DNA of 64,000 nt, from contig OZ116698.1 in NCBI GenBank assembly GCA_964199315.1, positions 9,796,001 to 9,860,000 of the forward strand. Direction: 5' to 3'. The position numbers and the translations under genes are program-made. The notes under the pieces were generated by a model that worked only from the letters and a program-made list of their open reading frames with translations, did no database searches and was not told the origin of the DNA. Source of the stretch: Orbicella franksi. Its lineage: Eukaryota. This document shows, piece after piece, positions 947 through 14,054 of the stretch. Every line of letters begins with the position of its first letter. Position 1 is the stretch's first letter.

Positions 947-3900
947 TTTGCATCTATCAATTGGGCATGTCCAATCGATTCAGCATCTGGGATAATCAAA
1001 TCACGGCCTCTTCTGCTCATAGCAGTCTCCACCTGAAGCCACACATGGGTCGGCTGAATAACCCTTACGGGTCCTGGTGCATAAAGAGAAGACATCGGGG
1101 ACCACATTACCTGCAGATTGATCTTGGTATGTAACAGGATATTATGCACTAGTCACTCATGTTACTCTCAAGGTCCATTTTAGGTCCTATTTATGTGCCC
1201 TAGAAAAAGACATTACAGAGAACGTAAAACTATCAAACTGGCTTAAGGTATCAGTAAGGGGAAAATTTGCAGTTTTGCATAATTTTACTTTTTTAAGCGG
1301 TTGGATAAATCTTAAAGTAATCTTTTAGATAAAAAAAACTCCACGAAAAAATCTTATTTCTGCCGCTAGTTATTGCGCGAGAAAGATTGTTTTGCATATT
1401 AATTACTTAATTGAGAGTTGACAAGTTCTGTCAAATGAATTAATTATCAAGGCAAGAAGTCACATGACATCAAGATCATGCTGAGTTGACACGCGATTCG
1501 CGCGCCATAATCAGTGCCGGATGTCTTCGAAGAAGACAGAGCGATCTTGCCCGTTTTCATCGGCTAAAGGAAGGCCAAAGAAGGCAAAAAACACTTTCAA
1601 CAAAGAGTGGGCCGCTAAATTAGCGGAAAGCGGCAAAGGGTTCGTTTTACAATCAAGAAAAATTGCTGGATGAACGCGACAACGATCGCGATCACGAAGC
1701 CAGCGAGCAAGCCGAAATGAGCGCAAGCCGCGCTAAAATACTGTTGCGAGAAACTGTCGAAGCAGAGGAGATTGACGAAGAGAAGTGGACGAAATTGACA
1801 GGCAGATCGATTGTACAAAATTAGAATCAGCAGTGCAACATTTTTTTTTTCTTACCCAGCTATTGTCATTTCTTCCAGTATCTTTGCCTTTGCATCAACA
1901 TCAGTCGATGTAGTCCCGTTTACGGCGTCCTCTCCAGCGTTTCCCTTTGTGCGCTTGCATTTTCTCGGGAACCTTCTACGGGCCTTCGGCATGTTAACAG
2001 TGACATGGTCATAATTTTGAAGATTAGTCAACCGATACGTAAAATTTCGAACGCTAATAGAGTAAATCAAAAGATAATTTCACGTTTACTAACTTTGGAA
2101 TTCTGACTTCACACATGAAAAAGCGGTTTATTCACTGGTGAATAATTTACCGCGCGCCGTCGCGGAAATTTGTACCTGTTCCATGTTAACTGTCATAGTC
2201 CTATTGTTATACAGAAAGTTGATTCCTCTGCGGTGTCTCCCTTGGTGTGATAATCTCATAACACTTGGATGCCGCCGAATTTTATTTTTTCTCTGTTTCT
2301 CGAAAGTAAAAAATAGGCGAGTTGTACGTGCATTTCGAGTTCCAGGTCGGCAGCCCCTGGACCAAATTGGCTGAAATTCGGAGAGAATGTTGTCAGAACG
2401 AACGCCGACGAAACCGTGTCTGCGAATTCTGATTACTCTTTTCATTAAAAAGTTATGCCTTTTTTTCGCGGGCAGTCCTATTTTTTTCCTTTTTCTAACT
2501 TTATCCTCTTGTCAAATAATAACAAACGTATGTGCCAAAAATCTGAGACACGGTTTTTGAGGTCAATGTGTGAAGAAACGGATGCCATGTTAATCGTTTT
2601 CTCCGACCTAAATTTAGCGGGCGTGTACCTTGATTTATGGGTTCGTGAAGCTTTGTAAATATATTCACCTTTTCGAAACACGGTAAATTTTTACCGTTTT
2701 AAACAGGTCAGGTCATAATCTGTAGTTATTAAGCTTCCAGTAAATATACGGTTTATATGGGTTTTTGTTAAAGCCGCGAACGCTAGAGCGGACCGCGCGC
2801 GGATGGTCAAATGGGTTATACTGATACCTTAAGAATAGCATTAAATGACAGAAATCTACGATCTGAAATACATACGATCCCTCAAATTCAAGATCAACTC
2901 AGAGAGAGAGAGCTCGGGGGGGGGGGGGGGGGGGGGAGAAACTCTGAAAATCATTAGGTGGGGATGTGCCGCTGGGATCCTGAAACCCTTATCCTATACC
3001 AGACCATGATCAGCTTGATTTTGCTACTCTATCCGAGACTAGCTATTTTAAATGCAGAAAATTTATCACTATCGTTGTCCAACATGCGCTAACTTAACCA
3101 ATATCTTACAAAATTATTTCCGAGTTTCAATTTCTGTTATAAAACCGGGGAAAAGAACCTTGTTCTACCCTAAATTATTTACACTCGCTACTTTTCTGGT
3201 AAATTATACCCCATTCTAGACCAAAACTGTCTGATTTCTATTCCCTATCTCACACTAAACTGCCTGAAAACCATATCCTTCAAAGCGGCGCATACCCATA
3301 TAACTTTTATATGGGAGATCCCCTGGACGGGGGATCGAAGCAATTTAAAAAAAAAAAAACATTCCTAAAGACAAAACAGACCACTAACTTATGGGTGCGA
3401 AACAAGTATTTTCTGAATTGACTGAAAAGCTAGTCCACTTTCAACCACGCTCACCCCGCCATCAACTTCACTATGGAGGTCGAAAATGATGGAATGCTTC
3501 CCTTTCTCGGTACTCAACTCCTAAACAGAGCGCCTCGTATTGAAACTAAAGTGTTTGTGAAGCCAACAAACAGTGGTCTGCTTCTCCATTACCACAGTCA
3601 TGTCGATAATAGGTACAAGCGCGGACTATTGACAACTATGCTCGATCGCGCACATCGCCTGTCTTCGTCATGGTCCTACTTCACTGAGGAGTGCGAACGA
3701 CTGAAGTCTGTTTTCTCTAAACTGAAATATCCCAAGCACCTTGTTGACTCCACTGTCAAAACCTTCCTAAATTTAAAGGTCGCTGATCAGCCCTCATTAC
3801 GGTCCAGATCTACGACAGAAAACACTACTCGGGTTGTCATACCCTTTAAAGACCAGGAGTCTGCTAATATCGTGAAGACACAGTTGAAAGATCTCAGTGT

Positions 3901-14054: not shown

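Follow-up and report, generated by a model that had tools for sequence, protein, structure and literature searches.

A secreted coral protein in which two lectin-type domains precede a long, nearly uncharged Gln/Gly/Met-rich tail predicted to be helical

A 64,000-nt stretch of the Orbicella franksi genome (GenBank assembly GCA_964199315.1, contig OZ116698.1, positions 9,796,001–9,860,000 of the forward strand; hereafter the window) was analyzed for a gene whose plus-strand open frames between positions 947 and 14054 gave discoidin-like, F-type-lectin-like, and Gln/Gly/Met-rich pieces. These pieces belonged to one spliced, polyadenylated stony-coral gene of 19 exons encoding 1171 amino acids, which was supported by RNA reads and by intron-less coral transcript contigs. 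The predicted protein carries, in order, a signal peptide, a short pro-region with an RVKR site, a discoidin domain, a degenerate F-type-lectin domain, and an 822-amino-acid tail. Two nearly uncharged arms make up most of the tail, and for each of them the sequence analysis strongly favoured a long amphipathic helix. The fusion of a lectin head to an uncharged Gln/Gly/Met tail of predicted helical nature was found nowhere else in the searches. Judged from the sequence, the new element is this variant of the 11-mer amphipathic-helix kind, while the lectin module to which it is fused was already known.

The tail spanned residues 350–1171 and contained five Pro residues, none of them in arm 1, and no Cys occurred after residue 341. 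Arm 1 (301 amino acids) consisted of 31% Gln, 22% Gly, 10% Asn, 10% Ala, 8% Leu, and 7% Met, with Gln and Asn together accounting for 41% of the residues and charged residues for 1.7%. Arm 2 (321 amino acids) contained 30% Gln, 20% Gly, and 7.5% Met, and 6.2% of its residues were charged. The middle domain between the arms (146 amino acids) was 42% charged, with 16% Lys, 11% Glu, and 10% Asp. An earlier reading of the window, made from the letters without database searches (the sequence-only reading), had described about 600 almost uncharged residues; the two arms agree with this description, but the charged middle domain that splits them had been overlooked.

Tested against 500 shuffles, the identity autocorrelation of both arms peaked well above the chance level at lag 11 (arm 1, z = 14.6; arm 2, z = 8.9), and lags 22, 18, 29, and 40 also stood out. 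The proposed 11-residue periodicity was thereby confirmed, although 11 is not the sole unit length, and segmentation of the repeats yielded units of 11, 18 (11+7), and 22 residues. Both arms shared the unit consensus Q-[GNQ]-Q-G-[MA]-G-[MAL]-[ALV]-[NG]-Q-[LAF]. Gly occupied position 4 in all 26 of the 26 units, which had been anchored by requiring that Gly. On an 11/3 helix, the hydrophobic positions 7, 8, and 11 share a narrow face with Gly 4 in an a-d-e-h-type arrangement, and the face opposite the hydrophobic stripe holds Gly 2 and Gly 6.

Analysis of hydrophobicity revealed one dominant peak at a period of 3.64 residues (3.64–3.67), which was significant in each part (arm 1, z = 43; arm 2, z = 36; entire 822-amino-acid tail, z = 22). 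Given the mixture of 11- and 18-residue units, this period corresponds to the pitch of an undistorted alpha-helix. No heptad power (period 3.5) could be observed in the arms (z = -0.5 and -1.0), which do not qualify as a canonical heptad coiled coil. A secondary peak at 2.2 residues reached z = 13 on the Kyte-Doolittle scale and 3.7 on the Fauchere-Pliska scale and was three times below the 3.64 peak. The hydrophobic moment of the whole of arm 1 at 99 degrees per residue was 0.29, compared to 0.32 in 33-residue windows, indicating that the stripe stays in phase over all 301 residues. The middle domain was also amphipathic, with a period of 3.75 (z = 14). With an 11-residue repeat and a period near 11/3, the arms belong to the 11-mer amphipathic helix class, a term that denotes a working mode and not a homology family; the sequence-only reading had named the same class (3-11 amphipathic helices), and the measured period fits it. 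Structure prediction of exon 10 alone by AlphaFold2 (AF2) produced two long helices with a predicted local distance difference test (pLDDT) value of 80.5.

The repeats were conserved as strongly as the globular part of the protein. Comparison with a full-length orthologous transcript (L019) at a synonymous divergence (dS) of about 0.3–0.4 gave ratios of non-synonymous to synonymous divergence (dN/dS) of 0.10 for the lectin domains, 0.09 for arm 1, 0.16 for the middle domain, and 0.07 for arm 2. Against a more distant partial orthologue (L018; dS about 0.9–1.6) the ratios were 0.11 for arm 1, 0.08 for the middle domain, and 0.08 for arm 2, the lectin domains lying outside the coverage of L018. 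Overall, the arms showed dN/dS values of 0.06–0.12 at dS values of 0.26–1.6, and purifying selection on the arms was equal in strength to that on the lectin domains. Protein identity of the arms to L018 was 81–84% at saturated dS, and exon 14, which encodes the bulk of the middle domain, was 83–100% identical among orthologues. Insertions and deletions between orthologues were of 11 and 22 residues or below, the smaller ones being of 4 and 7. Variants in the RNA reads comprised 13 synonymous and 11 non-synonymous changes; those in the arms were conservative, and in two cases a charge was lost (R to Q, K to Q). Taken together, the low dN/dS, the identity, the indels, and the variants indicate that the repeats are constrained in sequence and beyond mere composition.

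Exon borders were set from GT-AG sites and reading phase and were then compared with RNA. Reads of two raw polyadenylated (polyA) RNA runs, together with two sets of RNA contigs, were mapped over 5660–11655, where ten GT..AG joints could be detected (Table 1). Furthermore, a loose end at 11448 read into the first letters of the exon at 11764. A 1381-nt RNA contig began at least 117 nt 5' of window position 947, spanned every lectin exon, and reached into the large repeat exon, and a 1721-nt contig ran from 8211 through 11448 and beyond. Intron depth was zero in the polyA contig set, so that the signal represents RNA and not contaminating DNA. In addition, metagenome contigs (JGI/ENA) were scanned with the middle-domain exon, which revealed 11 coral loci, three of them intron-less transcripts: L012, which is 98.5% identical and covers residues 97–1107 of the model; the full-length orthologue L019, which is 91% identical; and L018, which is 71% identical. 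By BLASTN, L012 and L019 matched 16 of the 17 window exons (947–14054) one by one. The exception was exon 12, a 21-nt exon too short for BLASTN, for which the RNA joints are the evidence. The joints and transcript contigs together place the lectin and repeat exons on one mRNA, as the sequence-only reading had supposed. Most of the exon borders set beforehand were borne out by the RNA joints. The description in the sequence-only reading needed correction: the micro-exons at 9574–9594 and 9702–9777 had been missed, exon 8 starts at 7061, and the gene begins about 1.5 kb upstream of the window. The gene was single-copy, with no paralogues in a search of its own 497-Mb assembly, and its stretch was present in 14 RNA runs labelled as coral metagenome or as coded coral species.

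At the 3' end, exons 18 and 19 adjoin in both L012 and L019, the intron after 13307 is of the GC-AG type, and the 3' untranslated region extends to at least 14710 in the L012 complementary DNA (cDNA). The stretches 13200–13307 and 13813–13920, which open exons 18 and 19, encode near-identical sequences of about 36 residues, pointing to an exon that was duplicated recently within the gene. About one such unit is missing from L018, the more distant orthologue. The L019 contig (L019:2608-2794 against window 11277–11463) runs 15 nt beyond the donor at 11448 and has an in-frame stop codon there, and its second frame proceeds normally to the stop; an alternative donor, partial intron retention, or an assembly slip could explain the excess. 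The first part of L012 (L012:1-109) matches nothing in the window and joins mid-exon 4 at 4755; chimeric assembly is the probable explanation here, not an alternative first exon.

Recovery of the upstream exons, which the sequence-only reading had put forward as a check, yielded a signal peptide. Exon 1 was the best first-exon candidate in the 9 kb upstream, combining an ATG with a textbook signal peptide and a phase-compatible GT donor. It was backed by L019 at 77% identity, and exon 2 was recovered by means of L019. The exon 1 stretch occurred in 13 RNA runs, many of which also contained the gene body. The joined coding sequence was open over 1171 codons with canonical splice sites at exons 1 and 2. 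A proprotein-convertase-type site, R-V-K-R, stands before the mature N-terminus; in L019 it reads K-R-V-K-R, and the signal peptide is conserved there as well. No hydrophobic segment could be found at the C-terminus, which points to a secreted and not a membrane-anchored protein. With its signal peptide and a pro-region ending in RVKR, the protein is predicted with confidence to be secreted.

The two lectin-type folds named by the sequence-only reading were both recognized by Pfam. On L019, the discoidin family PF00754 scored 102.9 bits (cut-off 28.2; E = 1.8e-29) over profile positions 1–127, and PF22633 scored 71.1 bits (cut-off 27.8; E = 1.2e-19), which places the second domain in the F-type-lectin fold; the window exons matched both families piecewise. 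The Cys pair of the discoidin domain lies at residues 65 and 211 of 1171. The first domain matched neuropilin b domains, factor V/VIII C domains, and lactadherin at E-values of 1e-22 to 1e-30. The second matched striped-bass FBP32 (3cqo; per-domain E = 7e-16) and eel agglutinin (1k12; 3e-11) and was 36% identical to fish fucolectin repeats. The fucose-binding triad of F-type lectins, as in the eel agglutinin structure, is one His and two Arg. This triad was not retained: the His of the FBP32 motif C-[ST]-H-T is replaced by Leu in the window and in L012 and by Met in L019. The FBP32 motif N-R-x-D-C-C-x-x-R aligned with P-R-N-[SG]-T-E-L-K, where the Cys pair is absent and the alignment has a gap. 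Canonical fucose binding by the second domain is therefore unlikely as far as the alignment can tell. The closest carriers of the two-domain module were receptor-like proteins of Acropora and Montipora with fibronectin type III domains (31–34% identity), and none of the 120 relatives listed carried a Pfam family other than known globular domains.

Billions of proteins were searched for relatives of the tail without yielding a homologue; what came up were convergent, bacterial-looking 11-mer proteins. Comparison of exon 10 against 1.84 billion representatives using phmmer gave 56 matches. Six of these were examined in full and were unrelated repeat proteins, most with bacterial-looking units of 11 or 18 residues. 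None of seven matches scanned against Pfam had a lectin domain; some of them hit the Phasin, Perilipin, or Apolipoprotein profiles, which marks those proteins as convergent members of the 11-mer helix class. Word-indexed searches gave weak matches for exon 10 and none for the middle domain. A sequence search of the PDB with exon 10 gave nothing below E = 0.09, Foldseek comparison of the exon 10 model with the AFDB clusters gave no displayable match, and the search for look-alikes in the ESM Atlas gave no usable one. The literature held nothing relevant on the repeat motifs, on glutamine-rich coral discoidin proteins, or on spirocyst proteomes. Since no such tail occurred in the Acropora and Montipora proteomes of the searched database, the family looks restricted to a coral lineage, and unannotated copies may exist elsewhere.

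Two tandem arrays of 33 nt (G000:C1:20135206-20136195 and 20158174-20159136; L006-L010) also came up, with one frame open up to 381 codons and an 11-residue unit W-Q-F-S-G-S-G-x-A-V-A that bears a weak chance match to the hendecad exon. These matches at C1:20.13-20.16 Mb were rejected as paralogues, being probable satellite arrays rather than genes.

The function that is tentatively favoured, at a little under an even chance, is that of a self-packing helical rod, anchored by its lectin domains, in a matrix or fibre outside the cell. Each arm would form one very long, straight amphipathic alpha-helix with a narrow stripe of Met, Leu, Val, and Ala, Gly at its centre, and a polar surface of Gln, Asn, and Gly. 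Once the protein is secreted and cleaved by a convertase, its two N-terminal domains would tether it to a glycan or another extracellular ligand. Lateral packing of the arms, either of one molecule or of several, would be mediated by the stripe of small residues and by hydrogen bonds of Gln and Asn. The product may be an insoluble extracellular fibre or matrix, such as an adhesive, mucus, cnidocyst, or tissue-skeleton interface material, and Gln-rich arms together with a Lys-rich middle domain would suit transglutaminase cross-linking. The adhesive fibre proposed by the sequence-only reading is thus still plausible, as is a structural one. Self-packing is preferred because Gly lies at the stripe centre, charge is absent, and Met/Gln-rich proteins recur in insoluble invertebrate extracellular materials, including cnidoin (PMC4321713) and the insoluble proteins of the pearl-oyster shell (PMC7591529).

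Several observations limit the case for this rod. Full-length AF2 prediction with a four-sequence alignment had a pLDDT of 37, and this model was not used, although long helices ran throughout it. A three-copy complex prediction with exon 10 residues 100–234, run without controls, scored 0.00 with a chain pLDDT of 46 and speaks neither for nor against self-association. A Gly content of 21% is high for a stable helix, and the arms may be disordered until bound to something. The second domain is without the fucose triad, and sugar binding is thus not assured. Finally, one polyA run with the same species label was nearly devoid of reads, which makes expression of the gene conditional.

A coat for lipid or other hydrophobic surfaces, placed outside the cell or in the lumen of the symbiosome or a vesicle, appears possible but rather improbable. 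The arms would then be disordered in solution and fold as straight 11/3-type helices lying flat on neutral lipid or wax, comparable to apolipoproteins, perilipin 4, or ALPS motifs, while the lectin head steers the particle to a glycan. The 3.64–3.67 period with its in-phase straight stripe is the hallmark of surface-lying 11-mer helices, and the high Gly content and uncharged polar face resemble ALPS and perilipin-4-type helices. The coral protein matched the Pfam Apolipoprotein A1/A4/E family (PF01442) weakly, at 23.9 bits in exon 10, 14.8 and 12.9 bits in other exons, and 27.7 bits in L018, but all of these lie far under the gathering threshold of 90; convergent bacterial proteins matched the Phasin, Perilipin, and Apolipoprotein profiles, and no Perilipin match was obtained with the window exons or the orthologue. 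The class-A charge pattern is missing, and a hydrophobic face centred on Gly fits contact between helices better than lipid insertion. To our knowledge, no extracellular lipid-coat system of the apoA-I kind has been described in cnidarians. Secretion also puts cytosolic lipid droplets out of reach. The perilipin-type, cytosolic droplet coat that the sequence-only reading had offered was ruled out by the signal peptide, the RVKR site, and the disulfide-type extracellular domains, which leaves an extracellular or luminal coat as the only form of that idea. Met-lined helices are able to bind varied hydrophobic clients, for example in the C domain of Sgt2 (PMC8010706), which also speaks for a coat.

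Alternatively, the protein may be a soluble multivalent recognition lectin of immunity or symbiont recognition, with the tail as an oligomerising stalk that strengthens weak head-ligand contacts as in collectins, ficolins, and tetranectin. The tandem of discoidin and F-type-lectin domains, related at 31–34% identity to Acropora and Montipora receptor-type proteins and also to fish fucolectins, would suit such a role, as would secretion without a membrane anchor and an a-d-e-h-like hendecad core that fits non-heptad coiled coils. However, a stalk of 822 amino acids far exceeds the needs of avidity and is as strongly conserved as the heads, the fucose triad is lost, and the three-copy prediction gave oligomerisation no support, so this reading is considered unlikely. 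A disordered Gly/Gln/Met elastomer or phase-separating prion-like protein working by entropic elasticity or condensation in the manner of cnidoin is disfavoured and regarded as very unlikely; an elastomer had been another proposal of the sequence-only reading. The redox sensitivity that this reading attached to Met is purely speculative. The composition of the arms (31% Gln, 21% Gly, and 7% Met, with the Gln plus Asn content of arm 1 given above) is near the Gly/Gln/Met richness of cnidoin (PMC4321713), and both ESMFold2 and full-length AF2 gave low confidence. Against disorder stand the helical period of 3.64, with z of about 36 and above and in phase over 300 amino acids, and the strong conservation (dN/dS 0.06–0.12 and 81–84% identity at saturated dS), which is unexpected where function depends on composition alone. 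Arm 1 also contains neither Pro nor Cys, whereas the cnidoin unit QMQGCGQQXP has both, along with Cys-rich flanks. A functional amyloid or curli-like beta-solenoid built of 22-residue coils, each a pair of 11-mers with Gln/Asn ladders and Gly turns, is extremely unlikely. Its case is built on the Q/N/G-rich units of 11 and 22 residues, which recall the curli CsgA repeat, on a lag-2 identity signal in arm 1 (z = 5.7), and on the 2.2-residue spectral peak; that peak is three times under the helical one and shrinks to z = 3.7 with Fauchere-Pliska values, the 18-residue units disrupt the register of a 22-residue coil, and AF2 predicts helix.

Several known systems bear a partial likeness to the coral protein. 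The arms share with the 11-mer helix proteins (apolipoproteins of PF01442, perilipins, alpha-synuclein, group 3 LEA proteins, and phasins) the tandem units of 11 and 22 residues, the straight stripe at 3.64–3.67, very long uninterrupted helix-compatible stretches, and weak Apolipoprotein profile matches. They differ in showing no sequence homology (24–28 bits against the threshold of 90), in a nearly uncharged polar face of Gln, Asn, and Gly instead of Lys and Glu, in Gly within the hydrophobic stripe, and in being secreted and fused to two lectin-type domains. Hendecad coiled coils are known from tetrabrachion, and coiled-coil silks have cores of small residues; common to these and the coral arms are an a-d-e-h-type core within 11 residues, small core residues, and a potentially very long rod. 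The Gly and Gln contents of the coral arms are far higher, charged flanking positions are missing, and self-association is only putative. As for F-type lectins and discoidin proteins (FBP32, eel agglutinin, neuropilin b1/b2, factor V/VIII, and sea-urchin nectin), domain 1 is related to neuropilin and factor VIII at about 1e-29 and domain 2 to FBP32. The tandem itself also occurs in the Acropora and Montipora receptor-like proteins, and the coral protein departs from F-type lectins in the replaced His (Leu in the window, Met in L019) and the unaligned Arg motif. Hydra cnidoin is likewise a secreted cnidarian protein with a pro-region of basic end and a repetitive Gly/Gln/Met-rich central region (PMC4321713). 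Its repeat (GXGQQ / QMQGCGQQXP) contains Cys and Pro, it is disordered by prediction, atomic force microscopy, and molecular dynamics, and it has minicollagen Cys-rich flanks (PMC4321713), while the coral tail is without Cys and nearly without Pro, has helical periodicity and lectin heads, and follows a different unit consensus. Pearl-oyster shell-matrix proteins are secreted invertebrate proteins with Met/Gln-rich repetitive regions in an insoluble extracellular scaffold; no sequence relation could be detected, the oyster proteins also have acidic regions, and hendecad periodicity is unreported for them (PMC7591529).

A wider proposal is rather doubtful at present: the protein may represent a so far undescribed class of extracellular giant amphipathic helices, with two charge-free helices of about 300 residues faced with Gln, Asn, and Gly, a Gly-centred Met/Leu stripe, and lectin domains to aim them. 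Such helices could coat an extracellular hydrophobic surface or else build a Gln-ladder helical fibre, in which transglutaminase might link them to the Lys-rich middle domain. If this holds, physics of the perilipin-4 and ALPS type would have been moved into the secretory pathway of a coral lineage. Long 11-mer amphipathic helices are known from intracellular and plasma lipid-binding proteins, nearly all with charged polar faces. By contrast, the predicted coral helix is secreted, nearly charge-free, Gly-centred, in phase over 300 residues, fused to lectin domains, and conserved like a globular domain. It would offer a natural test case for the role of an uncharged Gln/Gly/Met helix outside the cell, and for sequence-level constraint on low-complexity sequence. 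In the context of coral biology, this expressed orphan could belong to an extracellular material of poorly known molecular composition, and it may be of interest to protein materials research, as cnidoin is.

Table 1. Exons of the lectin-tail gene (window positions unless another contig is named; arrows denote RNA joints)
Feature	Position	Strand	Evidence
Exon 1, ATG and signal peptide	L003:6470-6566, ~1.53 kb before the window	+	L019 N-terminus by tblastn; AG/GT sites; present in 13 RNA runs
Exon 2, end of pro-region, RVKR site, acidic stretch	L003:7934-8026 = window -67 to 26	+	L019 N-terminus by tblastn; canonical splice sites
Exon 3, first third of discoidin (F5/8 type C) domain including first Cys	947..1126	+	PF00754 positions 1-41; L019 cDNA 947-1130
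Exon 4, mid-discoidin	4646..4779	+	PF00754 positions 46-87; cDNA mapping
Exon 5, discoidin end including closing Cys	5668..5809	+	PF00754 positions 97-127; joint 5809 -> 6032
Exon 6, start of F-type-lectin-like domain	6032..6121	+	RNA joints, incl. 6121 -> 6564; fucolectin and FBP32 alignment
Exon 7, remainder of F-type-lectin-like domain, Leu at fucose-binding His position	6564..6872	+	PF22633 E = 1.4e-13; PDB 3cqo alignment; RNA joints
Exon 8, linker and charged beginning of predicted helical tail	7061..7224	+	Joints 6872 -> 7061, 7224 -> 7767
Exon 9, Q/G/A-rich beginning of arm 1	7767..7914	+	RNA joints, incl. 7914 -> 7987; periodicity
Exon 10, arm 1 core, 235 amino acids, Q/G/N/M units of 11/18/22	7987..8691	+	RNA joints; unit segmentation; AF2
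Exon 11, final arm 1 hendecads and beginning of charged middle	9291..9376	+	Joints 8691 -> 9291, 9376 -> 9574
Exon 12, 21-nt micro-exon, middle domain	9574..9594	+	Joints in raw reads and two contig sets
Exon 13, middle domain	9702..9777	+	Joints 9594 -> 9702, 9777 -> 10682
Exon 14, bulk of 146-amino-acid K/E/D-rich amphipathic, predicted helical middle	10682..10986	+	RNA joints; period 3.75; single copy in genome
Exon 15, arm 2 beginning	11271..11448	+	Joint 10986 -> 11271; loose end 11448 into 11764
Exon 16, arm 2 hendecads	11764..11900	+	L012 and L019 cDNA mapping
Exon 17, arm 2, 22-residue units	12515..12815	+	cDNA mapping; periodicity
Exon 18, arm 2, duplicate of exon 19 start, GC-AG intron boundary	13200..13307	+	cDNA mapping; splice-site listing
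Exon 19, arm 2 end, TAG stop 14052-14054	13813..14054	+	L012 cDNA 13811-14710

Other features were observed in the introns and around the gene. In the exon 13–14 intron, window 10260–10660 showed extreme RNA depth (summed word depths of thousands to tens of thousands), and every run had numerous loose ends and non-canonical joints there. The stretch resembles a highly expressed, multi-copy repeat or transposon fragment and does not seem to belong to the gene. The exon 3–4 intron contained a 285-amino-acid open frame at 3434–4288 (plus strand) with a Cys/His-rich C-terminal part, which matched no Pfam family at E <= 0.01 and may be a retroelement remnant. Upstream of the window, charged open frames on the minus strand (G000:C1:9780366-9783285 and 9790377-9791573), some coiled-coil-like and one of 434 amino acids, had no evident likeness to the lectin-tail gene when compared by eye only. 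A dispersed repeat of about 240 bp at window 45–283 occurred in more than 40 copies of 74–89% identity across the chromosomes of the assembly (G000) and looks like a short interspersed element (SINE) or a miniature inverted-repeat transposable element (MITE).

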